DNA of 64,000 bases. It comes from Bugula neritina. Its lineage: Eukaryota; Animalia; Bryozoa. Below are positions 4,594 to 47,637 of the stretch, in pieces. The stretch's first letter is position 1. Each line of letters starts with the position of its first letter. The position numbers and the translations under genes are program-made. Below the pieces are notes generated by a model, which saw only the letters and a program-made list of their open reading frames with translations, searched no databases and was not told the DNA's origin. The stretch covers positions 14,817,133 through 14,881,132 of the forward strand of contig OZ037771.1 in the NCBI GenBank assembly GCA_964035545.1. The letters are read 5' to 3'.

Positions 4594-7500
4594 ATGTCGA
4601 GCAGAGTTCAGGATCTGTTCACTGAGCTGCATACGTCAGCTGTCAACAATTTTACTACAGATATTCTGCTGCCTAACCAAACAATAGAACAACAATTAGC
4701 TCCTGGTGCAACTTTGAATGAGGTTTCCCCTAAAGTCATAGGAGCTGTAGTAGGAGGTGCTGTGGGTTGTGTTCTTGTGCTAGCTATAATCATACATGTA
4801 TTGCTACAGGTAAGTTTGTGCTAACTATAATCATACATGTATTGCTACAGGTAAGTTTGTGCTAACTATAATCATACATGTATTGCTACAGGTAAGTTTA
4901 TCTGTACACTGCGTAGCACGCACAAACGCAAGTATTATACTGTAAAAAGTTTAGTTTAAACTATTCATGGATGAGTCAGGTAAAGGTAAAATAGAATAAA
5001 TTAATAGTGATTTATGACACCTGCTTTCACATACCTGCCAGTTTCCATGGCTGCGCATACTTAATGGTTTCTTAGGACAAATAATTTTTCCCCTCAACGG
5101 GCTGCATGGTCTTTATTTCTGTCCTTCTCACCATTATTTAATTTGATAATCAAGATATCACCACTATTGTTACTGAGAGCTATACCCAGCACCAACTATA
5201 GGTCAGCTAAGTTGAACTTTGTTTCTGCAAGCATAGGCTGGACCTCAATATCTGGCAGCAATATGGCAGTTATTTAGCTGCCGTGGCTGTTAAAAGAGAT
5301 GAATTATAAAATTCTTGTTTAGACTCATATTTCAGTTTGCAGCAGCCTTCTGTATAATATTTTGTAACTTTTATGCATTTATATCCTGCGTCCATCATGC
5401 TGTAAAAAGCTACCAATTAAATATTAACAGCTGTTATGCAAGGAGTTGGCTACTTTTTTACAATCGAAGTCTAATTTCTTGACAGAAGCTGGAAAAATTG
5501 ATTCATACTTTTAGTTAAATCTTCTGTTAATAAATTTATAGAAAAAAAAACATCCTTCGGCTCATTTGAGAACCAAACAGTTGAGACAAGATGTCTACAC
5601 TATCAGTGGAGAATCCGGGAAGGAAAGTGGTCAATGGATGCCACAGCTTTGTGAAGAGGGAATTCATATACCTATTGGTAAGTTGAATCAGGTTTTCTCT
5701 GTAAATTATAATAAAATAGCTATAGTTGCAACAATAAAATTCTTAACCAAATGTTATTCTAAAATAAAGTGTAATATTTTTATATCGTTTCATTAATATG
5801 TAGGCTAAACCTACCCTATTTTTTATATGTCCTTTGCAGCTGGTAAAGTTTTGCTCTCCGTGCATATAATATAGGCTAAACAAGGAAATATGATTTGCCA
5901 AGTTAAAAATAAGATATAATAATATAATTCTGCGGGAAAAAAAAAGTTTAATTAAACAATGTTGCTTTGAAACATAAGAAATTCTCGTTAAATTAAATTG
6001 CTATAGCTTGTAGACAAAACTAGTGCATGATACATAATTTACAAACAAATGAATTATAACTGATATAGTCTTTGTAAGTTCTCAAATCTTTAATTTGGGC
6101 TAAAACAAGGTCTTGCATTATGTAAACCACTTATAGCATTGACTTGTTTTAAAGTACATATTATAGGTTTTTTCTCTATTATATAATTATGTGGTTTATA
6201 ACTGAGAAAAAATATAGCATTGAAAGTTCTCTTTAATTTACTCTCAGTTATTTGACAGCTTATAATAGGTTGATTGTTTGTGTTGAAAGTAAAACAGCTT
6301 TTATTTTAAGTACTTAGAAAACAATTATATTTGCTTTTTATAGAAGCTGAAAAAGCTGAGAAATATTCATCTCAACCATCAACTTATGAGTTTCTAAATG
6401 AGGGTTTCACCAGAAGCAACCCTCAAAATACAAAGAATAGTTTTGAGAATCGACTCTACAACCAGCAACATTATGAGCTTAAAGACTCTAAAAATAACGT
6501 AAGTTTAAAAGATAATTTTTTGTTTCTGCAAAAATTATAAATTTAAATGTTTAAAGTTATTATGTTCAAATTTTCATAACTGAATAAAGGCTTTTCAACA
6601 TGAAAAAAAAACAAAATCAATAAAAAATATAGAAAAAATTGGGAAAAACAGGTACAAGTTTAAGTCATAAGAGCAGCCTTAAATTTTGTTTGAAAAAACA
6701 TAACATTTTTCAAGTTATTATTTTGCCTTTTTATTGTAAATATACTTTGTGAACAAGGTAATTTGTAAACTAAAATATTGTTCTTATATTGAAAATTTAG
6801 AAGAGAAGTGGCGCCAGGCTGAGTAGCTTAGGAACTGTACCATCTGACACAGTTTCACAATACCTGGCACCCCCTACCTTGGAAGGGTCCGATGTGATAA
6901 CTAGAGGCACCCCATCTAGAAGAAGTAGAAGGTAAATTATATTATTTCAGTTGAGAGGCCAGAGTATTATAGTATGAGGAAGCTTATAAAACTTCACGCA
7001 AGTTTATTATATTCACTATATCCCTGTGAGAAACCCTGAGAGAAAGGGTTTTTTAAAGCAGGCTAAAGACTTATATTATACAAGAGCAATTATGACTGGA
7101 TGCTTTTCCTAACATCACCAATAGCCTTTACTGCATGGGTATTGAACCCATGACCTAGTGTTTACTTTAAGACAGCGCCTCGACCCCTTAGAAAAAAAGG
7201 GGGGGGAGAGGGGGCTGCTCCCTTAAGCTAACCACTTAGATGAGTATTTGAATAACAGTATACTGGCATTATAAAAGGCTGTGGAATCGAAATGGGAAAA
7301 TGACAATCTGAAACATTTAACTGTCTGGAAATATTTGAGCGCCACATGAGTGCATAAAAAGAGCAGCCATGGTCTATGGGTAAGAGCGATTGTCTAGTAT
7401 ACGAAAATTCATAAGCAGAAGCCATTGGTGATGTTAAGAAGAGCATCAAGTCATAATTACTCCTGTGTCTCATCTAAATAAGTCCTTAGCCCGAGTTTAA

Positions 7501-10500
7501 CAAAAACCCTTTCTATCAGGGGTCCTTACAGGAATAGCGACTATATACAAACTTGCGTGAGTTTTTTATACGAGTGTATAAAAAGCTTTGAGTTTCTTAT
7601 TGCAGAACATTTCTAACCCTCAAAAATTTCCTGATTCCATACGTTAGTGCAAACATGTAGTATGACTATTGCATTGTGTTAAAAATGTTGCATTTTTATA
7701 GTCTAGAAAACATTCCCGTGAATCAGAGAAGGTCCGCAGTTAATAAGAGTGCAACTATGGCATCACAGGATAGTGGCTTTGTGTCTGTAAACTCCATAGC
7801 AACCAGCCCTGTTTCGCCCTCCAGCATCAAAGAGTATCCATGGCAACCAAGCCAACATCCTTCGAAAACTAGAATTGTGCAAGCTAAAGAACTGATTGCA
7901 TGTAAGCTATATAATATGTCACAAGTTGAGGGTGATTAATTAGGCTGAGTTTACATGCAATAATGTCTATGATAAAAGGGACAATGGATTGTTTGTGTGC
8001 AATAGATGTACAAGACTATTGTGGACTATATTAGAGAAAAACCTAATTCTTCTATATCAAAAAGGTTCTCTAAAATCTAGTAACTATTTTCATATATAAG
8101 CTTAGTTACACATGAAGAGTTTTCCCAATGGTTATAAATTCAAACTAACCTAATGTGAGAGCAACTCCAAAAACTATGCATTGAGAAATGCAAACAATCA
8201 CATCAAATAAATTAAATTGGATATAACTTTACAAAACAAATTTGATTAAACAAATATGTAAAGAATTAAATTCATATGTTGGCAAACTTTTTAATCAAAA
8301 TTAGGCATTTAAATGAGCTGAAATATACTCATAATCTTACGTAGATAAATAACATATTACATCAGCTACCGCCGTTATAGAACCCTTATAATAATGCTCT
8401 CTGTTTTGTAGATGCCATAGAGAAATTCTATTCTATGCCAGACAGGCAAGTTGGAAAATGTTATGCTTCCAGCATATTTGCTATTGGAGAATTTGATTGT
8501 AATGGTGGAAGACTGTACCCTGCAGGTGACATGTCAGTTAGTTTGACAATCCCAGCAGGTGCCCTCAAGACCGCACAGCTTGTGTACTTACTGATGTCAT
8601 ATGATAATAATGAGTCAGGGGACCACACAGAAAACTTCTCTCCTACCATTGAATGTGGGCCTGATGGATTGCAATTTGAGGTATGAATCTGTTGGTTAGC
8701 TGTTGCATAACAAAAAAAGTAGTTCGTCACCTTGATTTTGGTCTAATAATTATATCACTAATTGTTGGTTAATTCAATTTTTGAAAAAACCAAAACTGTA
8801 GTAAATTATAACAAGTATTTTAGCTGTATAATAATGTCAATACATTAGGCCTACTTTTTAATTTTTGTATTGGTTTGGAATGCCTAATTTGTATGTTTAC
8901 GTAGTCCCGAAAATTTTTTTTTAGAAACCAGTGGTCTTGACGATGCCACACGCTGCTATAAACATGGAGCTAGAAACTTTGGCTTGTGAGGGAGGTTCTG
9001 CAGAGTGGACTGTTGATTCCAGTGAAACTGGTCCAACTGTGATTCATTCTACTGAAGAAACTGTTTCTATAAACATCCATCACTTTACAGGGTTTAAAAT
9101 GTCACGAATACCAGTTCGAGTGAGTAAAAAATCTTGGAAAAAAACATATTATACCTGACTTGGCGAGCAGGTGTCAAATAACTTTACATTATACTTCAAC
9201 TCCAGCATTGCCCATGTTCTTCACAATCAAGATTATTTAAAACCGTTTTCTACTTCTCAATGTTCATAAAACTGTTGAATACTTTGTTTGTAAAATCCAA
9301 CATTTTTCGAACCACATCATGCATGTATATATAGAGCTATATATTATATTGTCAGAAAAAAACAGAAAAGCTTATATGTTTTCAAGTCTTTAGCTTGTTA
9401 CGGAAGTCTTGCTCACTTGATATGCTCTATAGTTGTTGGTATTGGTTTAAACTTTACCATATTTACTGTTCTTTGAGTTCGGTAATAGTCAAAAACAATA
9501 AGTAGTGTACTTTGTAGCTAAATGACTTAAACATGATCTATGTTTTCTCAATCAAGTTACAACTTCTTGCATTTATTTAATTCTACTACTTGTTTTAGTC
9601 CAAGGGAGTAGGACGTTCAACACCTGTCGCTTCTCAAGGAAAAAAGTTGTCATTTCGAGTTTATACATGTGGAGATAAAGCAAGAATCTACTTCGTCTGC
9701 AGACCCAACTCTTCAAACATGTCTACAAAGGTTAGGACTTACAATAAACTAATAAAAGACCATAAAGTATATCAACCACTCATGCAATTATAATTTTAGT
9801 TTATGATAATGTTAAAATTTACCTTAAAAATGAACTTAGATTTGCACAAATGCTTTTTGTAATGTAAAGCTTTTGTTTTTAGCCAAATTTGTCATATAAA
9901 TTTACTCTATACTTTAGATTGTTATCATTACAAATTAATTCTGCAGATTATTATTATTTTGGAGTTATTCTGCAGATAATTGATAATAAAGAATATGCTC
10001 TTGGATTCCAAAGTGATTCACCCTGGAAAGATTTTTCATTTTTCTGTGGACATGGAGGGTTAGTTATTGAAGCTACCAGAGAAATTCAAAACCAACCAAT
10101 TTTATACAAGGTTTGTGCACCAAGCTCACAGCTTATAAACCTCTGTTATACACTTCATAGACCTTTATCATGGCTTCAACTTAGTTTTTAAATAAACGCA
10201 CATATGGTATAGCCTACAATTTCGTCAAAAATCTTTTTATAATTTTTTAAAATTTGTTGAGTATTGGAAGTTTTTATGAAAGAGAAAAAAATACACATTG
10301 AATTTTGTAATTTTCAACTTTTAATTTATGCTGCTCAATAATAAGTATATTGTTTATTGAAATGCATTAAATTATTAAATGTGAAAAATATACATGATAT
10401 ATTTTGTATCAGGAAAAAATAACAGAAGTGATTCGATCAATAACAAAATTGAAAGGATAAATTTATTTTTCCTGGCAGGACATTTTTTATTGTATACATA

Positions 10501-12165
10501 AAGTCTAGTACATTCCATAACCTGTTATCTGCATGATTATAGTTAGGTATTTACAGTAGCACTGGTTACTTGGTTTTTCACAGTAGCACTAACCAGTTGG
10601 GTATTTACAGTATACCTGATTATAGTTGGGTATTTACAGTAGCAGTGCTTAGCAAGTATTACCTTCTCAGTTCTACCAAGTAAAGTAATTCCCATAATTC
10701 TTATAATGTCGCCAGTCTAACGTAGAGCATACAAATCTATGCTTTTCATATTGTAGAGGTTTCCATTTACTGAAGAAAAAGTGATGAGGGCCAACCATGA
10801 GTCAGTAGAGTTTATTGCTACAGAGACCCCTTTGATACTAAACATCAATGCATTCCAACCCTCGTACAAACCCAACTACACTCAGTTCTGTATCAAGTTA
10901 GACAGAAATTCCACCCCCAGTTCTTTACTAATTGCAGACGAGAGGAGAATTGAGTACGAACAACTTCGGTCTCTTATGGTAAGTGCAAGTTGTCAACTTT
11001 TGTATGAAGTATTCTAATTGAACGCTTGATATAGAGTGCTGAATGGTAAAAACTTTACTCATTATGCTATCTCATGTGCTCACAATAAAGTATTTATAAT
11101 AAGCCATCATTCGCTCTCATATATATTTCAAATTTAGCTCTCATAGGTTTATAATTTATTTTGATAAATACATTTTTGATGCTCTTAGGTCTAATTTATT
11201 TTGGTTTCATACTTTTTGGTTATTTTTTTACTTACCAGTTTTTTTGCCATACTCCTTATTCAATCACATACCTCTATTATGTAGGTACTGTCATATCCCT
11301 ATTATTTGCTCTGGGATATTTATTATTCATTTTTTCAAGACTTTTATTACCCTATAGCGCGGATTTTAAAAGCACACTTTGTGTAACTACATCAAAATAT
11401 TGTTTTTATTCAGTTGAATTTGGAGCTTCAGTCAAGCATATCTTCACACAGACACACAGACACTCTGCTACTGCCTGCGCAGACAAGAAGTTATGGTAGA
11501 TCCATTTCAGACACTTTTGAGCATAACATGACTTCATATAGAACGCCAGAAGAGAACTGTGAGCATGGGTATGTTTAATAACATAAGATAATATATAATA
11601 GTTATACAATATATAATAGTATATTATAATAATAATATAATAATTAATCACAAAACATAACACATCTCACCACCCAATCATAACACAGCAGTGAAAGGTG
11701 AACATAAAATATAATACTCATAACAAATTCAATTTATTATTATGCAATCAACAGCAATACCAAAATAAACACTTTGGATGCCACTAAATTAATTTTTATA
11801 AACACATCAGTTTTAAAAAAAAAATATTTTGCATGAATTTAGTTGTATGAAAAACGAACGGGCAATGTTTAATAGATGTCTGCACTATATTTATCAGAAA
11901 TGACGTTGGCGCCTGCAACTGTTGGCAAGGTGCCAGAAACAGATCTCCCGTCGAGTCAGAATACGAAGAAATAAGCACCCAAGAAATTAGACGTGGTGTC
12001 ACTCACAGACGGAGCAAGGAGAGTGGGTATGAGTCATGTTCAGTCCAGTCGCCCGTCTCTCCACTGAAAGGTCCTGAATCATTGTATGGCGCCCCTTCTT
12101 CTAACATGGAATTGAGTATACATAGCCTACAGGGTGGAAGAAATACTCTCCCAACTGAACTCTAA
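4594..12165 (+). CDS. Gene A: type III single-pass membrane protein with ZU5 and UPA-like domains (UNC5CL-like, no death domain), ~737 aa, 12 coding exons
   Basis: Phase-consistent GT-AG exons: 4594-4809, 5542-5677, 6344-6498, 6801-6931, 7702-7901, 8412-8680, 8925-9119, 9599-9730, 9976-10110, 10757-10978, 11414-11568, 11898-12165 (2214 nt, open to TAA). TM VIGAVVGGAVGCVLVLAIIIHVLL followed by KKK. ZU5 signature AIGEFDCNGGRL..VSLTIPAGA..FSPTIECGPDGLQFEKPVVLTMPH..HFT. UPA-like KEYALGFQSDSPWKDFSF. Ends PTEL*. AATAAA at 12345-12350. Confidence 0.88.
4775..4899 (+). repeat. 41-bp tandem triplication spanning an exon/intron junction of gene A
   Basis: gtgctaRctataatcatacatgtattgctacaggtaagttt x3; donors at 4810, 4851 and 4892. 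Confidence 0.95.
6986..7222 (-). mobile_element. tRNA-derived SINE family 1 copy
   Basis: Reverse complement of the family head (gctgctccc at 7214-7222), core caattatgactggatgcttttcctaacatcaccaat and tail cacgcaagttt. Confidence 0.75.
7360..7570 (+). mobile_element. tRNA-derived SINE family 1 copy
   Basis: gagcagccatggtcta head, core ccattggtgatgttaagaagagcatcaagtcataattactcctgtg, tail aaacttgcgtgag. Confidence 0.75.
10544..10645 (+). repeat. Degenerate minisatellite (ggtatttacagtagca core, ~4 copies)
   Basis: Repeated ggtatttacagta at ~10546, 10600 and 10629, with a variant at ~10572. Confidence 0.7.
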
Positions 12166-12238
12166 ACTTTTAGCATGGAACTGAGTACACACAGCCTACA
12201 GGGTAGAAGAAACACTCTCGATTACAACTGAACTCTAT
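12104..12238 (+). repeat. 69-bp-period tandem duplication of the gene A C-terminal coding end
   Basis: atggaattgagtatacatagcctacagggtggaagaaatactctc (12106) vs atggaactgagtacacacagcctacagggtagaagaaacactctc (12175). Confidence 0.9.
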
Positions 12239-13390
12239 AAAGATGCGAAGATATTCTGTAAATACTGTGAAATATTGTAAAATAATTTTATATTTATGTG
12301 AGATTTCAGATTAATATTGTCAATTGCTGCTGCAAACAAATTAAAATAAAACTATTATTTATATAATAATGAGTTTTATTGTACTTGCACTACAAAAGAG
12401 ATTGCTTTTTTCCCCAATTTTCTGATGCAATTAACGTTGTCTGAATGTTTCTTAGGCATGGAATAAACCAAAAATCAAATAAGTCACAGAGCTAGTATTT
12501 ATTAAAAATTATAAGTTAAAACAAATTGAAACATTTTCTATAATTAAGGCTTTCATTTTTCTTAAACTTCAGTTTTCAGACTTGATGTTTTGTTACTATA
12601 TTTTAAAAACCAAAAGTAAACTATGTGGAAAAAGCTATATTTATTTTTTATTAGGTATTATTTGGTGCAAAGAGAAGCTAATTGCTACAGTTGTTTAAAA
12701 TTGTTAAAACTAATTGAATATTCAAAAGATGAGAAATTAATTTTTATATGAGACTTTAATTAGTTTGCTGTAAAAGTATATTGATGAACAAAGCCATTCG
12801 ATGCTATATGATCATAACAGTAAATCTCTTCGTCACGGCACAGTTGCTTTCCATAATGAAGATATTAGCTTTTTCTGGTAAGAAAAGCTGAATGGCAAAA
12901 CTATAGTCACTGCCTATTCAAACCTAACCTTATCTTTTATGAGGTGAAATATGAAGTGGCTAATGTATTGTTCCTCATGATAATTGTGTGCTATTATGAA
13001 GCTAATGCAATATTTACATAGCCACTTTTTCAAATAGAGCCACAGTATTTGCTGATCAGGGTACCAAATATTTTCTATAAGGAGTAATGAAACCGACTAT
13101 ATAGTGAAACTGCCATAATCATAAGCATGCTTATCAATACAAATTTTTCCTGGTTGGATTTATTTATTTGAAAGCCTCATTTGGGAGTGGTTGAGAAGTG
13201 AGGTAAGATATTCAAATTAACATTTATTAATTTGTTTATAACTAGTTTTGTTATTTGTATTTATTATAATAAACATGTGTTGGGCTCATAGGATGAAATG
13301 TTAAATATACTACCATTGAAAGTTAACTTACCAAATCTTCACAACAAAATATTGCGAAGTTTAAAATTATTGATGCTTTAAAATAATTTT

Positions 13391-13462
13391 GCCCCCACTG
13401 GGATTTGAACCTGGGACGTCTGGCTTGCATGCAGGTGAGCTAACCATTACACCACAGGGACC
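13391..13462 (-). mobile_element. tRNA-like element (family 2; tRNA pseudogene or tailless SINE)
   Basis: Reverse complement GGTCCCTGTGGTGTAATGGTTAGC...CAGGTTCAAATCCCAGTGGGGGC has A and B boxes and resembles tRNA-Gln. Anticodon stem does not pair. Followed by AAAATTATTTT. Confidence 0.65.
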
Positions 13463-14451
13463 CACTGCATGGGCAACACTACAAATGCACCATTTTAAAT
13501 GATGATTCTTTTTCAAAAATATTATCATATATTAAATATGTGTTAACCAAAAACTATGTTTCAGACATTTATACTGCTTTGCTTGGTATCACAATATTAC
13601 TTACTAACTTCTAATAAATAATATAGTAGCTAAGTAATACAGTACTACTCAATAATAAATAATAATGTGATACTATGTAATATGGTGTTACCGGATAATG
13701 CTAATAGTAATAATGCATTATTTGATAATATTATATTAATATAATACAATATTGTAGTATATATTACTGTAGTAGTATAACTCTGTTTTACTAAATATAG
13801 TACAGCAACATTTATATTGATATTGTGTTATATTTATACTCGCACTGTATTACAAGATATTGTTGAATTTCTTAGTAATGTAGCATCACTTAGTAATTTA
13901 GTATTAACAACTTTTAAGCAAACTGAATATCAAGTCGGAAGTTTTAAGGAAGTTTTAGATTTGGTAATATGTAGTTAAGTTAGCACTTATACAATGTCTA
14001 TTATTTGTATAGTAGAGTTTCAATTCACAATATCTGTTTTAACAAAGCATCATTATGAACTTGTAAATGCATTCAAATTTCAAAAGTTTTCAAAAGTTAA
14101 TAATCTTGAGGTCTACTTATGTTTACTTGAAGTTTATGCTTCCCCCTCTAGATAGCACCTGTTACCCACACAGCTGCTGGTATACCATGGAATCGTATTT
14201 GTTGGCTTAGGACAGCTTAGGGGACCAGGAAGTTTGCTAACTAGGCTACTGGTGATTCATCTTTTGCTTTGCATGATATTTTTATTTCTACTTTAGAACA
14301 TATGTTTTGAGATAACCAGACTGGGTGCTTTGAAACTCAAGGCTAAGTTATAGTCATATAAACGAGCTCTTGTTGCATGGGTGCCATTTGTCTAATAACT
14401 AGAGAGAACATTTTTAGGATGATCTCCACTGTTTGTCATTAGAAGAACTGC

Positions 14452-14602
14452 TGTAGTAGCTATAGTAGAAGTAGTAGTAGTAGCAGTAGCAGCAGTATAG
14501 CAGTAGCAGCAGTAGCAGTATAGCAGCAGCATTACTTATAGCAGCACTACTGCTGCTGGTAGCAGCAGTAGTAGCAGTAGTAGCAGTAGTAGTAGCAGTA
14601 AT
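14452..14602. repeat. (GTA/GCA)n trinucleotide microsatellite
   Basis: gtagtagtagtagcagtagcagcagt... Confidence 0.9.
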
Positions 14603-15585
14603 ATTAGCTTTTTAAAGGATACACCCTGATATTAATTATATAGCAAATTACAATAGGAGATGCATTGTAATATAATGGTCAGGTTGCCAGGTTTTGGTGT
14701 TACTTGAATTTCTTTTTATTTGTTTACTTTGCCTTTGAAGCAGCGCATAGGGAACTCAGAGCTGGGTATCTGACCGTAGAATATAGTTGGTAACATTACA
14801 TGTATAAGAGATTAAATCACATGTAGTGTTTAGCTAAAGTCTGCATCCTTACATAATATGCTGTTTGCTTCCAGGGTGATCAACTGCTTCAGAAGATTCC
14901 ATCATTCCATTGGTTTGTCCAGAGATACATTACTTGTTATTGGCTAACTTCAAAGTCCACTTTCTCCATTATACTATTGAAGTATGAACCAGTATTTTTG
15001 ATAAAACAATATTTGTTTATATTTTATTTATCTGAGTTTTGCTTAGAGTGTATTGCAACTCTGTATTGGTGTTGAGTGAGGTTTTGGAAATCATTCCAAG
15101 GTAACATAGAACTCGTGATTTTGAGAGAGTATAATGCAGTATATAACCCTCTAACACTCATCATACTAAATTTCTATTGCTTCACTACTACCTTTAGAGT
15201 ATCTTAGACAATCTGAATACAGCATTGTTTTAATGACTTTTAGTGGAAGCTCACTTGAGTGCACAGCAGGTCAATTGAGATGTACTGTAAATCTCACCTA
15301 GGTTATATTATACAGCTAGACCTTAAAATAGTGTCTCCTTATTGCAAATTGTTTTTTCAGTTACCGCATCGACAGTCAATTTTTAATGCAAAGTAAAAGA
15401 TCAAGAGGAGAAAATTAAATAAATGGAAGTTATATTTAAGGGAAAACTTTGTTGTAACTGAGAGATCAAATTAGTTCAAAGACATCGTAGAAAGTTGAAT
15501 TAAAACTTGTTTTATGTTCTTGTGTAATTATACATCATGGTAGAGTTCATCTTTTAAATGTTTTCCTCTGTTTGCCATGTTTCAG

Positions 15586-18500
15586 ATGTCATCACCAACG
15601 TTGATAGAATTTACGATTTCACCCAATGGCTCTGTTACATTGGAGAACAACTACACCCTCTCGCATACAGAAAGTATGACTCAGACCACAGCTGAATATA
15701 CAAGCTCAGCTGAATATACAAGCTCAGCTTTATCGGTCGGTGCGATTGTTGGAGTTACAATTAGCACTGTGGTACTTTTGCTGGTTCTCCTTCTTCTCAT
15801 TAGCTATATTTTTGTTCAAAGAAAGGTATGATCTGCAGTAACACATCTTAAAAAAAATTGAAAATGTAATTTGAATTGATTTTGCCCTTCTGTTTGTAAC
15901 AGCCATTATCTAGAGTCTAGATTCTAGAGTCTGTAGACTGCATGACCTGAATGATATATAATGAAATTATCCACACATACTATAGTACAAACACATGCAT
16001 GATACGCTTCACCTGCTACAACAACACACAAAAAAGCTGATTGCTTTTCATTTAGAATATAACATATCTGTATTATATCAAATTAGTTGCTCCGCATATA
16101 CTGTATTAGTTTTGTGGGTAGAATGCAGTTTAAGTGGGGAGCATAACTCCAGTACAGAAAGAACAAGGCGAGGGAGCAACTCTGAGTAGAGGAATTTTTA
16201 TTGTAGTATATATAGCTGGTAAAAGTAGTCTTGATCCGGCGAGCTCCAGTAGTAGACAGATTCTACACTATATACTAGCTAGCCTCTTTTTATACAAGAA
16301 AAAGTTTTTGTTCTCATCCTTCTGAAAGTCGGAGCCCAAATATCGGCACCTTCCGACAACTCCGACATCGGTACTTTGATCCAATGTCGGAGTCCGACTT
16401 TCGGACAGGATCGAATAACATAATCGCACTGCATTAATGTTTAAATAAATTACAAATAGGGTGCAGGAAAAGACAAATCTAATGTGATATATATATTTGC
16501 CGTAGATTTCCAATACAATACTACTTCGTTTTTTATATGTTTTATTATCAATAGTTATTGAGCAGAGATAACCAGATTGCTGATTTATCATATTAATGTT
16601 ATCACTATAATAAAGTATTTAACTGCTTTGTTTGTTATGCAGTTTTCATAGTCTTAGCACACATGACAAGGCGCCAACTTAATGAATTTTTATGCCCTGT
16701 TTGTTTTTGTATATCAACATTTTGAATCATTGCTACAACAAGTAGAAAGTTACAATCACTGAATTACAACTAAAAATAAAAAAAGTTCTATAGTTCAAAA
16801 GCTACAATAACCTAACTTGCATCACTTTTTTTAGGTAAGGTCACAGCCTCCCAAGCGAATGCACAGTGGTTCAACAATCACCACGAGGTTGATGACTTCC
16901 ATCAACTGCTTTGGTAGAATCTTTGGTGGTCAAAAAGCTGATCCGAGTCGGCCCCAGACACTCTATGATGATCAGTATGACTTGAGAATCAGTGAGTCTT
17001 TAGTATGGCAACTTGATTAAATACATGACTTGAGAATTAGTTAGCCATTAGTATTATTATAAATAATTTGAGTGAAGAATTGATGTGATTTTAAAGCAAA
17101 ACCTTTAGTCAAAGTAATCCGAAACTAAAACCAGAATAATTTTTGTAATTAAAATAACACAAGTATCAAATTGATTTGAAAGAGAAATTGCTCTGCTGGG
17201 TAGTCGAACACACTTGGGTGAAGCAAATAAGCTTTATTGCCTAAATTTATAATTGCTTTTACTGCTTTTGGTTTGGGCTGGCCTAGGATTGAGATTATCA
17301 CGGGGCATAACTCCTTTTGCAATCTTTATAATTATTGTCACAGGCTTTCTCCATATTTTATCTTACTGCCTATTTCTTTGTTTGACTAGGTAATCAGTAT
17401 TATTTTTGAAATTATTAAAATCAATAATGACCAGAAAAACTTTTTATCTACATTATATTGCTTGAAAATTTGGCAATACAGAGTTGCCATGTTTTGGTGT
17501 AAGAGATGCTGCTTTTACACAAAAGACAAGCATCTCACATATGATTTGAAAATCTATGCAATTATAAAAGTGAGAAATGTTTTGCATATAAAAACCTATT
17601 TGGTGAGCTTATTTCTAAAACTTTGAAATGTTTAATTAATGTTATTTGTATTTCGTTGTAATATGTCAGTTGATAGTTATTTATTATTTTCTTCCAATCA
17701 AGGCAGTGCCCTACTTTTAGGTTATTTGAATGTCCAACCTGAACAATCAGATGTCTTAGAATCAAAACCTGCCATACTCAAAAAGGCGTCTGTAGCATCT
17801 GAGGCGAATGTTTATGATGAACCTTCGATATTTACCAACAATCTAGAAATAAGAAGATCACGCAGAAGTAATGTAAGACAAACTGATATATATCTTGCTA
17901 TGCAGTCAGACAACTCAAACGACTTTACTGGCACTGAATTGGGTCTTGAAACATGCATAGCACTGCAGAAAAAACATGGTAACCAACCAGAAAGATCTTT
18001 ATATGAGCCAAGAGTGAGATACTCCAGTAAGCGTAAAGAGTCAGAAGAAGTTTTCCAAAATACAGAGCTATGCCAAGAGAAGGATCCAGCTGATAACGAA
18101 ATATATGAAAACTGTGAAAGCTTCAACCCAGTCTTTACTAACAACCATGAAGACTCTTATGGTGTTGAGGTAATCAGTTTCTGAGCAAATAAAATGTAAC
18201 GAAATAAATTATGAGGATGGAGATCAAAAAAAGAAAAAACATGATGAAGTAAGAAAAAAAGGGAAAGGATCAATTCGTTTTCCAGATTCTATTTGATTTT
18301 TCTTTTGTAGAAAAAAGCTTTTATCTTTTGACACTCAACTGTAAATTCTTAGTGCTAAAAATGCCAAAACAAGATCCAAAAACACTGATTAATATTTTAA
18401 TAAATTGAAACATTCTAAACACCTACATGCATAAGTCACTGTGGATCAATGAAATAAATTACTACCGTCAATATGGTATAGAGATCTTTAATTATCGCAA

Positions 18501-21500
18501 AATATATTTAGTCAAATAAGTTTAAAAATTTATAGATCAAATGTTTTTTTTCACAGTTTTTGTTTCAGCATTTATTAACTTTTTACAGGAGATATATGAT
18601 GAAGCGGAGGCTTCAGATGAAGAAGGATGGAGAGTTATGAAAGCGCCTACAATATTTCTATCAGAGAAAAATGCACAAGCAATGATGCCTATGTGTTCAT
18701 CTCGCTGTAGACCCATAGCAACAGAACCTGATGACATGTATTTAGATATTAGTGATGAAGAATGTTATAAAAATGTAAGCTTCATACAGATACACCTTTG
18801 GTTTTAATGTGTTTACAGCAGCATATGGCATATTTTGGCTAACTATAGATCAAAGCATAAATCTCAAAAGTTTCTCTCTTACATTTACTATAGTTGTTGA
18901 TTTTTATTATGTTATGGATTTCAAAAACGTGACTTTGTGTAGGTACCATTTCAGACTAGATTTAAACACTCCAATGGTAATCATTCTGATAGCAATGACA
19001 GGTCACATGGTCAGCTACATCACAGATCACATGATCACTCACCAAAGATGACTCAGACCAACAGGTAAGCCATAGTAATATTTTATTATAAGCTCTGCTT
19101 TCACAAAGCATCATGTTAGAAAAGCTAGTTTCTGAAGGTTTATTGTAAAATAATTTTGTCCCCATTGGGATTTGAACCCAAGACCTCCGGCTTGCAAGCA
19201 AGTGTGCTAACCATTGCACCACGGAGACCACTGGGTCAACTCAACACTACATTTCAACCAGCTCTCTGAACTCTACTGGCTTATCTACTACTCCTTCAGT
19301 CTTCAGGCTCCCCTGGCCACTCAACTCCCTTGGAGTACTACTACAACTCGCTAAGGCCGAATCGAACCCGAAACCTCTGGCTTGAAAGCAAGGGTGCTAA
19401 TCATTACACCACACGGACCACTGGGTCAACTCAACACTAATTCCATAAAATATAATATACTATGGTATAGTCAAAAATGTGATATAGCTGTTATATTATA
19501 TCTAGTCAGGAAATCAAATTGTGAAAGTATAAAATTTTTTTTTATCAAAGTTGGAACAAGTGAAAAAGATGCAGGATGGAACTGTTAATGAAGTTTTATG
19601 TTGTTTATACTGATTGTAGTACCAATGCGTACCATTTATACACTACCGTCAACTCGTAATTTACAGGTATCTGGTATATAGTGTTGATTGCAACACATTT
19701 GTAAGAGTCTAGTTAATACTAAAGTTGTTTAAACTCTTCCACTATTAGCTGAATCATATTTGAGTGAGTTTGAAGCAAATGGACAATAAACATATTTTTT
19801 ATTTTAACTTTATAGAACTCTCAGCAAAAGGGAACTTGTGAGAAAACAAATCATTGAAACGGTCGACAGCGGCTTCAACTCACTCAGTGTCTCAAGTGGC
19901 ATCATTGTGAGCCCCACCAGTTGGAATCCTTCAGGCTTTAAACAGCTCCTATCAACCGAAGATCTGTTACCAAGTAAAAAAAAATTACAACTCATTTTAC
20001 ATATGGAAAAAATATCTGGTTAATCCTTCACCCTTTACTCTAAGCTATCTATCGCTCACCATGGACATTGATCATTGTTACAGTTAACAATAAATCACGT
20101 TGTTGCTATATTGGTATTTCTAGCATAGTATACCCTTAGTAAATATTATATTGAATTACTATAAAATAAAAATCAATGTATAAATTAAGTAGGTAAAGGT
20201 AGTATGGTTTAGATATGTTACCATGAATATAAATGTTTAATAACTTCGCATTAGTCAAAACACTATATTTTGAGAATTGTAGCTTAAGAAAATGATACCA
20301 TTGTAATGTAAATAAACATATATTGCACACAATTTTAAAGTATTTAAAAATAATTGCGTTTTTGTAGATGCCATAAAGAAATTCTATTCTATGCCAGACA
20401 GACAAGTTGGTAAATGCTATGCTTCCAGCATATTTGCTATTGGAGAATTTGATTGTAATGGTGGAAGACTGTACCCTGCAGGTGACATGTCAGTTAGTTT
20501 GACAATTCCAGCAGGTGCTCTCAAGACCACACAGCTTGTGTACTTACTGATGTCATATGATAATAATGAGTCAGGGGACCACACAGAAAACTTCTCTCCT
20601 ACCATTGAATGTGGGCCTGATGGATTGCAATTTGAGGTTATCCAAATTCTTTCTTGAAGCATTTTGAACGTTAGATTAAGTTTTAAGTAAAAATAACAAG
20701 TTCCTATACTGCCCTTTGTCATTCACTGCGTTCCAATGCTTCGAATAGATATGTACAGGTTGTTAGTACGGATGGGTTGGTGATTTTAGTTTGCATTCTA
20801 TATGGTTGTGGTTTTATTCCATTGAAACTGTTCCCACGTATGAAATGAAAACTTTGTTGAAAAAGCATAGAGACGTTATGTTTTAAATGTTTGTCACATG
20901 AGTTTTCGAAAATAATATATTGTCAAAAATGTTGAAACATATTTGTTTTCTAGGTATCTGCTGTTTTGACAATCCCGCACTCGACTGTCAACATGGAGTT
21001 AGAAACTTTAACGTCTGACGGAAGCTCTAAACAATGGAAAGTAGACTCTAGTAAAACTGGTCCAAGAATTATCCCAACAGATTCGAAGAATGTTGTCTCC
21101 ATCAGCATATGGCACTTTACTGGATTCAAAGTATCCAGGATTCCTGTTAGAGTAAGACACAGTGCTCATGCAAAACTATTTTTCAATAAACCTTAGTAAA
21201 CATTTCCATATTCACTATTAGCATACTATGTTATAATTAGTAATTCATTTAATTTCACACTTGATTAGGTTACTTGAACAGCAAATTTGTTGGCTCCATT
21301 GAAGATAATGTAATAGCTATTAATCATTTATATCATCATGGGTTAAGGGCTATATGCAAATGAATAACATTATAGTGTACCTAGAGGCAAGCATAAAAAA
21401 CATTTTTTACTGGAAATGTTACTGCTTATCTATAATCCTTGCATCTGTGTTAATTAAAGTTGAATGTGCAGTACTGCAAGCTTCACTTTATTTAAAACAA

Positions 21501-24500
21501 ATTTGTGTAGTCTGATGTGCATGAAACAATTATTAGTTGATGACCAATGTTGAGTTGGAGGCTGATCATCTTTTTATGTTATTTATTGAGATAAAATTAG
21601 TAGAGTTGTAGTTGATAAGACCGTTATATGTATAAGGAAGAGAAAAAACCGGTAAAGGATTGTGGGTAATATAATAAAGTATTTGTACAGAATATTGAAA
21701 ATTATCCACTCTTGATAATTAGTTATAAGAAAGAAGAAAATTATTAGTATAATCATTTATTTGTATTAGTAGTATTATATAGATGTTTTTCATTGGGGAG
21801 GAAGATTGCGTCCTATCAGCAATCAAGAATTCTACTTTTTTGACAAGTGTAGACAAATCTGTCTATTTGCAGTCTTCTGCAGCTGGCTGCTCAGCCCAGT
21901 CCTTATCACCAGCCAAGGAAGGAAAACTCCTGTCATTAAATGTCTTCAAAAAAGAAGAGAAAGCAAGAATTTACTTTATAAATGCACCCCCGTCTTCACA
22001 TGCATTGAAACAGGTAATACGTATAATACATATGTATGTGTATGCCCACACAACTTGAACATCCACGAACGCAGGCACGCACGCACGCACGCACGCATGG
22101 CACACTTGAAAGTGCTCAGTTCTGAAATGGAATATACAGTGTATTACATAATACTGTTATAATACCTGCGTGTTATTGCCTCTAATTGAATAAAGACAGC
22201 TCTCTCAATTTTATTTTCAACTGTTGCTGAATATTCTGTATAGATGGATCTTTTCATAGTATTATGCTGTTCATAATATACTCTCATGGAAGTTCAATTG
22301 ATGTTGCAGAAACATGTGACAACTAAAAAAACATTTTTCTGTTTTTGTTTTTCAGGAAATTATCGAGAGAGAAAATATTCTTGGCTTCTCGACTGACTCC
22401 CCGTGGAAAGAGTTCTGTTTTTACTGTGGATGTGGTGATTTGGTGATTGAAGCTTCGAGAGAGATTCAAGGCAAAAAATCTCTCAAAAGGTTAAAACTTA
22501 CTGTAATATACTAAATTGATCAAAGTTGAACTATTGCTTTCAGTATAGTTGTATATCCATGTTTCTTAAAATTTCCCACTTTAGAAGTTTACATTTACCG
22601 AAGAAATGGTTCTGCTTACGAATCAAGAGTCAATAGAGTTCATAGTAACTGAGACACCGATGGTGCTAGACATCACTGCTCACCAGACGTCACCTAGCCT
22701 CTTCTCCCAGTTCTGTATCAAACTAGAAAAGATTGAGAAGCCCTCTCTACCACCCAGTCAAATTGAAGAGAAGTTGAAGGCACTTGTACAATCAATTACG
22801 GTAAGAAACTGCTTAAACTAACAGAATTAATAACATATTAGCAGTTTGTTTCTGTTCTGTAACATGATTACATTTATATAGAGTTTCATTGCTAGTATGT
22901 GGAGAGTTAATTTAGATATTCCTGTATTACCTCTTGCGTTGTGTTCTAAAATAGAGCACATTTGGTTACTTATAAACTACGTATACAAAATTATACTCAT
23001 AAATAGATCAAAAATGACAGAATGTAAAAATTAATCCAATATTATTGATACTCAGAATAATAATATTAGCAGTGTTGATGATTATACAGAATGAAAGTCA
23101 CATTAATATAGCTGATATTAGTAAACACTGCATGAATTGTACACATGCAGACACGAAACTAGTTTTAGCTGTTATTTTTATATAAGCAATATGATATATG
23201 GTACTCAAGTATAAACAGTCATGATTTATATATTATATATATATACCTTCTTGACATATTCATCTCTAGAAAATCTGCGACAAAACATCAAGCTGTGAAA
23301 TTCCAGTTTTCTTGAAACTGATGATAAAAAAAATAATTGAGGCTTCTGAGAAACCATCTTTCTGTAGTCCTAGTAGTTGAAAACTTAATTGCATAATTTA
23401 TATGCTTTAAGCAGGCAATTAGGCTGTACATTGTCTGATTCACTTATCAAATAATAAATAATTGACTGCTGAGGGTGACACATTAAAGGGAGCACTAACT
23501 AGTGTTTATATACTGCATTGTTATATCATTATAGTATTATATTATAAAACATATTATGGTATATGGTTTATATAATAATGTATACTGTTGTTATACTAAC
23601 ATAACAGTGTTTTATACAGAGTATATAAAGTTATTATTACTTAATTGAGTAATGAGGTATTAAATCTTCTTGCATGTAAAATGTTATTTATACGGTTATA
23701 GTTAGACCTGTTCATACAACAAACAGAGAGTAACCTAGCAACCAGTGAAGGGCCGCAGCAATTAACATTGCATCCACCTAGTAACAGAGAAAGCGACATT
23801 TCACTACCAACGCCAGCACCACTAACTTTAAACGAGCCTGCGTTGGAGGACTACAGCAATCCATACGCACAGCCAGGAGCGCTTACCCAGAATGCATCTG
23901 GTAACGCAGAAGAGGAGAGCAGATGATCTTGGTCTCAAGATATGCGTGCAGTCAACCGTGACTCAGCACTTCCTGTTAGAGTACCAGAAGAAAACTGTGA
24001 ACACAGGTAGAGTTCTTAGGAATATATAAAGCATTTTGTTTACTGAATAAGAGATGTCAGCTTATAGAACAAGTGCAACTAAAAGTGTTTGCTTGCCAAA
24101 GTTTGTTTATTTAATAGAAACATAAAATAATTTTGTACCACAAATTTGTTAAATTATATAGACTCACTGCAAGTCTTGTAAAGAAATGTCTTTTCTTGCT
24201 CGTCAATACGTCGATCAAGATATGCCGATTTTAAAAAGTGTTCAGGAATTTTTTACCTTGGAAAATGTACCATTACATCACCTGTTTTTATCAACATTCA
24301 ATGCCTAAATTGTTATAAGTTATGAAGTTATAAGTTATAAACATTTATATTATAAGTTCTATAATTCATTGCAAAGTGAGTTAAAGCTAGATTGAAAGAC
24401 TTTTTAATTTCAGCGACACACTTGGTGCGTGTGGCTGTAGGCCAACAGGTCTGCAAGAAACACGCCAACGAGAAATACTGGAGGTTCCAGGCCAGCGTGA

Positions 24501-24603
24501 AGGCGTGAAAAAGAATCGACGAAGCAGCGGGTACTCCTCATGGCACCCGCAATGTCCGTCCACAGCATCAAAACAATCAGACTCTCTCGAGCTAAAGCTC
24601 TAA
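15586..24603 (+). CDS. Gene B: paralog of gene A (TM + Tyr-rich region + ZU5 + UPA-like); disrupted in this sequence, so possibly a pseudogene or truncated allele
   Basis: Exons 15586-15825, 16835-16991, 17721-18169, 18589-18774, 18943-19064, 19816-19973, 20368-20636, 20954-21151, 21873-22013, 22356-22489 (or -22502), 22585-22800, 23702-24006, 24414-24603. Exon boundaries match gene A from the degron exon onward. TM VGAIVGVTISTVVLLLVLLLLISYIFV. Exon 10 is 1 nt shorter than its A counterpart, and there is an in-frame TGA at 23924-23926 with homology to A continuing beyond it. Confidence 0.8.
19157..19229 (-). mobile_element. tRNA-like element (family 2)
   Basis: Reverse complement GGTCTCCGTGGTGCAATGGTTAGCAC...TTGGGTTCAAATCCCAA: D and T arms pair, anticodon arm does not. 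Same AAAATTATTTT 3' flank as the 13.4 kb copy. Confidence 0.65.
19250..19419 (-). mobile_element. tRNA-headed SINE flanked by a 24-bp direct repeat
   Basis: Head on the - strand GGTCCGTGTGGTGTAATGATTAGCAC...GGGTTCGATTCG plus ~100-nt body. gaccactgggtcaactcaacacta is identical at 19226-19249 and 19416-19439. Confidence 0.65.
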
Positions 24604-47330: not shown

Positions 47331-47637
47331 AGAGAGAGAAAGGTTAGGAGAGAGGATGGAAGAGAGATGGGGTAGAAGAGAGAAAGGGAGAGAGTCAGAG
47401 AGATAGTGGAAAAGGGAAGAGAGAAAGGTTAGGAGAGAGAGAAGGTGGGAGAGATGGAGAGTGGGAGAGAGAGGGAGAAGGTGGGAGAGACAGAGGGTGG
47501 GAGAGAGGGAGGGTGGGAGAGAGGGAGGGTGGAAGAGAGGGAGGGTGGGAGAGAGGGAGGGTGGGGGAGAGGGAGAGAAAGAGAGAGAGGTTGAGTGGAA
47601 GGTGTGGGAGAAAGAGACAGAGAGAGGAGTGAGAGAG
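47331..47637. repeat. Polypurine (GA/GGA-rich) low-complexity tract
   Basis: ~300 nt almost entirely G/A with gggtgggagagaggga units. Confidence 0.92.

Follow-up and report, generated by a model that had tools for sequence, protein, structure and literature searches.

To our knowledge, the characterised proteins with a ZU5-UPA module (UNC5, ankyrin, PIDD1, UNC5CL, NLRP1, CARD8 and SH3BP4) all lead to a death-fold domain, and the pro-inflammatory output of UNC5CL is reportedly TRAF6-dependent. UNC5CL retains a transmembrane (TM) helix together with the autoproteolytic supradomain (PMC10084454). In NLRP1 and CARD8, UPA self-association and degradation of the N-terminal part have been described (PMC7794386), and a polymerising scaffold that carries TRAF6 motifs is enough to produce a signal (bioRxiv 10.1101/2024.05.08.593169). 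Here, we analysed a stretch of 64,000 nucleotides of AT-rich animal DNA from Bugula neritina (hereafter the window), in which two paralogues lie in tandem on the plus strand, gene A (4594-12165) and gene B (15577-24603). The explanation that we favour, with middling confidence, is that genes A and B represent a death-domain-less branch of the UNC5CL-like membrane-anchored ZU5-UPA proteins and that their products may recruit TRAF6 directly. We found no description in the literature of a TM-ZU5-UPA family without a death domain (DD), and the database names of the relatives are 'uncharacterized' or 'hypothetical'. An earlier reading of the window, made from the sequence only, had regarded the architecture as one without a described relative. 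We instead consider it a variant of the UNC5CL design and not a separate category of system, because it corresponds to UNC5CL (anchor, ZU5, UPA, cut at HF/S, TRAF6 output) minus the death domain.

Both proteins have the order of elements that had been claimed for them, with each element in its place: a short ectodomain, a TM helix, a Tyr-rich disordered linker, a ZU5 domain with the tripeptide HFT, a UPA domain and a disordered tail. The ectodomains contain two N-x-[ST] sequons each (NFT and NQT in A, NGS and NYT in B) and lack a signal peptide. A, B and two of the relatives described below (P0004 and P0014) each have a single hydrophobic helix that begins after 45-55 residues and is followed by basic residues. 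The proteins are anchored N-out/C-in by this one helix after a short glycosylatable stub. As in UNC5CL, the N-terminal anchor comes without a large ectodomain and the remainder of the chain is cytosolic. The linker of each protein ends in DSGF[VN]S, and the position of the death domain is taken by a disordered tail of approximately 140 residues (gene A) to 190 residues. Of note, the linker of gene B holds a series of acidic Tyr motifs (NVYDEP, DIYLAM, SLYEPR and EIYENC in 17721-18169; EIYDEA and DMYLDI in 18589-18774) that resemble Src-family kinase sites and the SH2 docking sites of transmembrane adaptor proteins.

The Pfam ZU5 profile (PF00791) matched one exon of each gene (8414-8680, E 2.9e-8; 20370-20636, E 1.6e-8) and the Watersipora orthologue P0004 (E 1.1e-11). 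For the structure, an AlphaFold2 (AF2) model of this orthologue (P0004:225-695) served as a proxy for the window proteins. ZU5 and a second beta-sandwich were modelled with a predicted local distance difference test score (pLDDT) of about 90, and the tail with a score below 50. The best Foldseek match of the model was the ZU5-UPA-DD region of UNC5b (E 7e-14), followed by ankyrin and by the FIIND of NLRP1 and CARD8. Structural alignment with VIA-align gave Z 21.1 and rmsd 3.4 over 256 residues against UNC5b (3g5b, model residues 29..312), Z 12.8-12.9 over approximately 240 residues against the FIIND of NLRP1 and CARD8, and Z 9.5 and 8.5 for the NLRP1 UPA alone. The nearest fold cluster in the ESM Atlas was a chordate cluster of 493 amino acids with ZU5, UPA and Death, and ZU5/UPA families were the sole matches of a feature search. 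Thus, the expectation of ZU5 plus UPA was borne out by the fold and by the ZU5 profile, but not by the Pfam UPA profile, which had no match at E up to 10; for this reason the UPA call rests on the fold, and by the model the post-ZU5 region is a UPA domain.

The HFT tripeptide lies at 9081-9089 in gene A and at 21113-21121 in gene B, and it is kept in all family members and in the DD-bearing relatives. In the VIA-align superposition, the C-terminal fragment of NLRP1 aligns from residue 152 of the P0004 model, which is the T of HFT. The tripeptide occupies the hairpin that is matched by the start of this fragment. Autoproteolysis between HF and T (HF/T) is predicted from the conservation of the motif and from its position at the hairpin where that fragment begins.

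A further claim was that neither protein has a death or CARD domain, and it held in every search. Pfam matched neither Death nor CARD in the window exons and the orthologues, and searches taken as far as E 10 also gave no death domain; the modelled fold had none, and tblastn with DD regions against the window returned nothing. A scan of the whole genome with the Death profile found 13 exons, four of which lie beside other ZU5 genes and none on the window stretch. The gene A transcript ends at the stop codon of exon 12, as seen in an RNA contig of a close relative. An overlooked death-domain exon was considered and was ruled out by the tblastn search, the genome-wide scan and the RNA contig that runs past the stop. 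The two proteins therefore lack the C-terminal death fold (DD or CARD) of ZU5-UPA supramodule proteins, including the IRAK-engaging death domain of UNC5CL. They also differ from FIIND proteins in reading HFT rather than SFS, in having no match to Pfam FIIND and in having no CARD.

An exhaustive search with the ZU5 exon collected 53 proteins, mostly exon-sized fragments. The range of the family given here is that of this single search, because word-indexed searches with P0004 (whole, from ZU5 to the end, or tail only) returned P0004 and P0063 alone, and found no tail homologue outside the family. The full-length relatives are P0004/P0054 from Watersipora subatra ('uncharacterized protein'), the 987-residue transcript product P0014 (Logan contig of SRR17902662), and P0048 (assembly GCA_001039355.2, which we take to be Lingula anatina), a receptor whose ectodomain is rich in cysteine. 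P0004 repeats the whole order, namely stub, TM helix, DSGFAS, ZU5, HHFTGY, a UPA-like region, RSYGRS, PQEHCDH-NGACNCW, RRSKESGYES and SPVSPLKGP. P0014 retains the stub, the TM helix, DSGLAS, HFTGY, PGEYSD beside a Cys cluster, and KESGYAS, and P0048 retains the order in part (HFTRY, PVEHDE/PEENTE, KESGYSS). Two further relatives bear a death domain, P0038 ('UNC5C-like', Ptychodera flava) and P0045, both with ZU5, HFTGF and matches to Pfam UPA and Death. When P0045, which is UNC5CL-like, was searched against the genome of the window, it matched the ZU5 exons of A and B alone. As a DD-bearing UNC5CL-like query matches just these two genes, A and B look like the UNC5CL-like representatives of their genome. 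The third UPA exon was found in that genome in genes A and B only, and the A-type last tail exon in gene A only. Outside the window, at least 19 ZU5-like exons lie in tandem on contig C4 (12.41-13.08 Mb), with no Death matches nearby. This array was set aside as what appears to be a separate, expanded ZU5 family, having no third UPA exon, no tail exon and no tblastn match to the collected proteins.

Four short motifs are conserved across lineages in the collected sequences, namely DSG-hydrophobic-x-S, HFT, PxExx[DE] and KESGYxS. The first reads DSGFVS in gene A (7769-7786) and DSGFNS in gene B (19865-19882), and a six-frame translation of the window, with its 128,000 residues, contains no other match. 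It is present in A, B, P0063, P0004 and P0014, with related forms in P0022, P0029, P0040, P0044 and P0048. In the tails, PEENCEH begins at 11546 (A) and 23984 (B), followed by GACNC at 11908 (A) and GACGC at 24424 (B). The pattern PxExx[DE] occurs in every family tail, as PEENCE in A and B, PQEHCD in P0004, PGEYSD in P0014, and PVEHDE plus PEENTE in P0048, and it adjoins a conserved Cys/His cluster (C-x-H...C-x-C). Of the tail motifs, KESGY[EAS]S is the best conserved, being common to Bugula, Watersipora, the transcript P0014 and the brachiopod-like P0048. It reads KESGYES in gene A (12016-12036) and is degenerate in gene B (SSGYSS, approximately 24511-24531).

We estimated chance rates by shuffling the disordered parts. 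DSG-hydrophobic-x-S is expected 0.003 times per linker (0.3%), and [DE]SG-hydrophobic-x-S 0.005-0.009 times per tail (0.5-0.9%). At these rates, the two Ser-Gly motifs, as sequence patterns, are far above chance over about four lineages. The rate for PxExx[DEFWY] is 0.11-0.22 per tail. The co-conservation that had been predicted for the DSG-type motif, HFT and PxExx[DE] was recovered in Watersipora P0004 and in the transcript P0014. The degron account built on DSGFxS was supported as far as the pattern recurs in Bugula, in Watersipora and in one independent transcript; it had missed the better conserved KESGYxS, which places another degron-like motif on the C-terminal fragment.

Candidate partners for both kinds of motif are encoded in the same genome. 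Beta-TrCP is found at two loci, and there are many TRAF MATH exons, including one single-exon MATH domain (contig C1, 28.40 Mb) whose best match among PDB structures is TRAF6 (E 1e-35). A complex model of the gene A tail exon with this TRAF6-like MATH domain reached an ipSAE of 0.79 in three of three runs, compared with 0.01 for the best of three controls; for comparison, 51 of 78 solved complexes attained this mark, as did 2 of 108 mismatched pairs. At least 65% of the contacts agreed between runs, and the partner pLDDT was at least 41. In the modelled interface, R43 and P45-H51 (PEENCEH) of the tail exon face R68 and the HKGFGYMEF strand of MATH, which is the canonical groove of TRAF6-peptide structures. 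The complex model shows likeness of the motif, not binding, because the scoring is uncalibrated for peptides and disordered chains and possibly recalls solved structures. Hence, of the claim of a TRAF6-type tail motif, the presence of the pattern in every family tail stood and the gene A motif could be modelled in the MATH groove, while the pattern alone says little.

We infer cleavage, degron use and signalling for the A and B proteins along the following lines. The ZU5 domain would cut itself at HF/T, as in UNC5CL, PIDD1 and FIIND, and the two halves would remain associated because the first strand after the cut belongs to the ZU5 sheet. PEENCE in the tail would enter the MATH groove of TRAF6, and self-association of UPA would supply the avidity that TRAF6 needs. 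From this contact and this avidity would follow a direct feed into NF-kB/JNK-type signalling that bypasses the DD-IRAK step of vertebrate UNC5CL. The [DE]SG-hydrophobic-x-S motifs, once phosphorylated, could recruit beta-TrCP with either of two outcomes: destruction of the membrane-bound half, which would free the UPA-tail fragment by a FIIND-style functional degradation, or plain termination of the signal. By its Tyr motifs, the membrane-bound half is probably also a kinase-regulated docking scaffold. In sum, the proteins probably cut themselves at HF/T, present TRAF6 motifs on a self-associating UPA and are controlled by phosphorylation at Ser-Gly and Tyr motifs. The strongest version of this idea is a natural single-chain signalosome, in which a tethered ZU5 autoprotease would keep the UPA-tail fragment inactive, kinase-triggered loss of the N-terminal half through beta-TrCP would set the fragment free, and the resulting UPA oligomer would switch on TRAF6 directly by a linear motif, with no death fold anywhere in the pathway; we consider this version unlikely. 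It would place functional degradation outside inflammasomes and outside vertebrates, a step for which we would claim just a small chance.

Several observations weigh against direct TRAF6 recruitment by a released UPA-tail fragment. The post-ZU5 sequence is divergent, as its failure to match the UPA profile indicates, and the fold was modelled on the Watersipora orthologue rather than on the joined protein of the window itself. The TRAF6 pattern alone is weak evidence, with an 11-22% chance of occurring in any one tail, and the Cys/His cluster next to it could have another role. The complex score may reflect a memory of solved TRAF6-peptide complexes. A degron-like motif on the supposed signalling fragment complicates the notion that the N-half is destroyed and the C-half freed. 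In addition, the gene B model is incomplete and its tail motif degenerate, and few sequences of the family are known, which leaves about four lineages as the basis for conservation.

An alternative is a stable transmembrane adaptor, in which ZU5-UPA, cut or uncut, is a binding or auto-inhibitory unit like that of UNC5 receptors and ankyrins, the intact protein signals through its Tyr-phosphorylated linker and its tail motifs, and the DSG motifs set its turnover. Cytokine receptors with beta-TrCP degrons are known, such as IFNAR1 and PRLR. The best structural match, the cytoplasmic domain of UNC5b, is not known to cleave; the linker, above all that of gene B, is full of acidic Src-like Tyr motifs; the tail and its TRAF6-like motif are predicted to be disordered and thus accessible without release; and a degron-like motif lies on either side of the ZU5-UPA module. 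HFT is, however, strictly retained in family members and DD-bearing relatives alike, and its location at the start of the FIIND C-fragment would be superfluous in a non-cleaving scaffold. We regard the stable adaptor as doubtful, but as a serious contender. The chance rate of PxExx[DE] also leaves room for tail motifs that are neither TRAF nor beta-TrCP sites, with C-x-H...C-x-C binding metal or forming a structural or lipidated element, the S/G/Y motif having some other reader and the output being unrelated to TRAF. Watersipora has kept the Cys/His spacing seen in Bugula, and the word-indexed searches for tail homologues remained within the family, both as such a tail would predict. Yet the tail was modelled as disordered, with no knuckle, the complex model puts PEENCEH exactly in the canonical groove when controls score 0.01, and the brachiopod-like P0048 has PEENTE without the Cys cluster; this makes an output apart from TRAF improbable in our view. 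Lastly, the proteins might act as a signal-degradable sink, an IkB-like negative regulator that keeps TRAF6, or some other protein with a MATH domain, inactive at a membrane until a kinase fires and the whole protein is destroyed through its two degron motifs. The TRAF6 complex model would fit, as would the fact that the two degron-like motifs flanking the folded module are the best conserved linear motifs, but UPA oligomerisation normally activates TRAF6 (PMC7794386; bioRxiv 10.1101/2024.05.08.593169), and we judge a sink to be very improbable. The DD-less UNC5CL-like branch with possible direct recruitment of TRAF6 thus remains the explanation that we prefer.

The exons behind these proteins were defined by tblastx between A and B, splice sites and intron phases, and for gene A also by RNA-seq contigs of the close relative, placed on 6300-12299. 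Gene A has 12 exons with 2214 coding bases (737 codons) and consistent phases throughout. Seven GT..AG joints were found in the RNA contigs (7901>8412, 8680>8925, 9119>9599, 9730>9976, 10110>10757, 10978>11414 and 11568>11898), and one contig crosses the stop codon into the 3'UTR. Exon by exon, gene A is 86-95% identical to P0063, the truncated Bugula neritina model EB796_007768; P0063 and P0004 were taken as stand-ins for the complete proteins. Exon 1 (4594..4809; GT donor at 4810; 86% identity to P0063) is an open reading frame that starts with the ATG at 4594 and encodes the 47-residue ectodomain and the TM helix. Exon 2 (5542..5677; AG/GT, phase 0>1; 93% in tblastn with P0063) encodes the basic juxtamembrane stretch (KKKH...) and the beginning of the disordered linker. 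The linker continues through exon 3 (6344..6498), which contains Tyr and is supported by an RNA contig joint 6497/8>6801 and by splice phases, exon 4 (6801..6931; 95% in tblastn with P0063; RNA joint into 6801; phases) and exon 5 (7702..7901), where DSGFVS is located. ZU5 is split between exon 6 (8412..8680) and exon 7 (8925..9119, with HFT), each bounded by RNA joints on both sides. Three exons encode the UPA-like region in each gene; in gene A these are exon 8 (9599..9730), with the ARIYF strand and an alignment to the UPA part of the P0004 model, exon 9 (9976..10110), with 47% identity to P0004, and exon 10 (10757..10978), whose sole other copy in the genome is that of gene B. All three are supported by tblastx between A and B and by RNA joints.

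The tail of gene A is encoded by exon 11 (11414..11568), with RSYGRS and PEENCEH (PEENCE at 11546-11563), and exon 12 (11898..12165), with GACNCW, RRSKESGYES (ESGYES at 12019-12036), SPVSPLKGP and the stop codon (12163-12165); exon 12 shares 48% identity with the P0004 tail. Splicing between the two tail exons is in phase 2 with GT..AG, in A as in B. The splice from PEENCEH to GACNC that the sequence-only reading had drawn for gene A coincides with the RNA joint 11568>11898, but its start of the first tail exon at approximately 11483 had to be moved to 11414 (RNA joint 10978>11414).

Wherever gene B is readable, its exon phases are those of gene A. Exon 1 (15577..15825) was read from the frame and encodes the ectodomain and the TM helix. 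Two provisional linker exons follow, one at 17721..18169 (open frame, AG/GT, phase 1>0), for which the preceding 0>1 exon was not found, and one at 18589..18774 (open frame and splice sites). The DSGFNS exon (19816..19973; phase 2>1) corresponds to exon 5 of gene A. ZU5 is encoded by 20368..20636 and 20954..21151, the latter with HFT, and UPA by 21873..22013, 22356..22490 (both by tblastx between A and B and splice sites) and 22585..22800 (tblastx and the genome search). The PEENCEH exon (23940..24006; PEENCE at 23984-24001) is a prediction with its acceptor at 23940 or 23953. Because this acceptor is in phase 1, one more tail exon, ending at 23899, is probably needed upstream. The last exon (24414..24603) carries GACGC, the degenerate RRSSGYSS and the stop codon (24601-24603). 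As the intron phases demand two to three further small exons that were not located, the gene B model is left provisional with regard to intactness.

Between A and B, DNA identity is approximately 70%, with the exception of the first ZU5 exon; here, counting a few intron bases on its flanks, the two copies agree at 97.5% over 279 bases (8404-8682 and 20360-20638). The gene A copy of this exon is nearer to the gene B copy than to its own Bugula neritina orthologue. Because of the contrast with the rest of the genes, a recent local gene conversion of this exon is likely. Other repeats were also observed. A 41-base unit that comprises the end of exon 1 and the GT donor of gene A is present in three tandem copies, 98% identical (4775-4899), giving three candidate donors of which the first alone keeps the frame. 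A very high-copy, tRNA-derived SINE-like repeat occurs in introns and between the genes (6900-7600, 13379-13467, 19146-19233 and 19364-19423), at a contig depth hundreds of times that of its flanks and with an Rfam tRNA call on the minus strand at 19157-19228. A purine-rich (AG/GGGA) degenerate tandem repeat at 47418-47588 lies where the GC and AT skews of the window are strongest.

If the family is conserved with a TRAF6-type tail, it would represent an autoproteolytic ZU5-UPA switch wired to its output by a short linear motif alone, and in lophophorates a membrane sensor may connect to TRAF6 without the help of death-domain polymers of the MyD88/IRAK kind. It would also be a natural test bed for two questions, whether UPA oligomerisation plus one TRAF6 motif suffices to signal and whether degradation-triggered release preceded the vertebrate inflammasomes. 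If the motifs are inert, the finding is an uncharacterised, lineage-restricted pair of UNC5CL-like paralogues. The locus offers a testable example, supported by computation, of a linear motif in the place of a death-fold domain, in a little-studied phylum.

Among known systems, UNC5CL/ZUD and the invertebrate 'UNC5C-like' proteins such as P0038 share with A and B the N-terminal anchor without the Ig/TSP ectodomain of UNC5, the cytosolic ZU5-UPA and HF[ST] at the end of ZU5 (HFTGF in P0038 and P0045). A and B differ from UNC5CL in having, instead of a death domain, a disordered tail with PxExx[DE], the Cys/His cluster and KESGYxS, and in lacking a match to Pfam UPA; their proposed contact with TRAF6 would be direct, whereas that of UNC5CL runs through DD-IRAK. 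FIIND proteins (NLRP1, CARD8) share the ZU5-UPA fold and have their cut site at the hairpin where that of A and B is predicted, and they resemble the proposed logic in that destruction of the N-half sets free a UPA-effector half, which then oligomerises (PMC7794386). A and B, in contrast, read HF/T and not SF/S, are membrane-anchored rather than cytosolic and end in a linear-motif tail, not a CARD. The UNC5A-D netrin receptors and the ankyrins (ZU5-UPA-DD) provide the best structural match (3g5b), but they have large ectodomains or ANK repeats, cleavage of their ZU5 is not known, and a death domain stands at their end. Finally, CD40, RANK, MAVS and the engineered CHARMS signalosome share a membrane-tethered chain with PxExx(acidic/aromatic), and in CHARMS an oligomerising unit plus TRAF6 motifs suffices (bioRxiv 10.1101/2024.05.08.593169); the oligomeriser in A and B would differ from all of these in being a UPA domain under the control of a ZU5 autoprotease.

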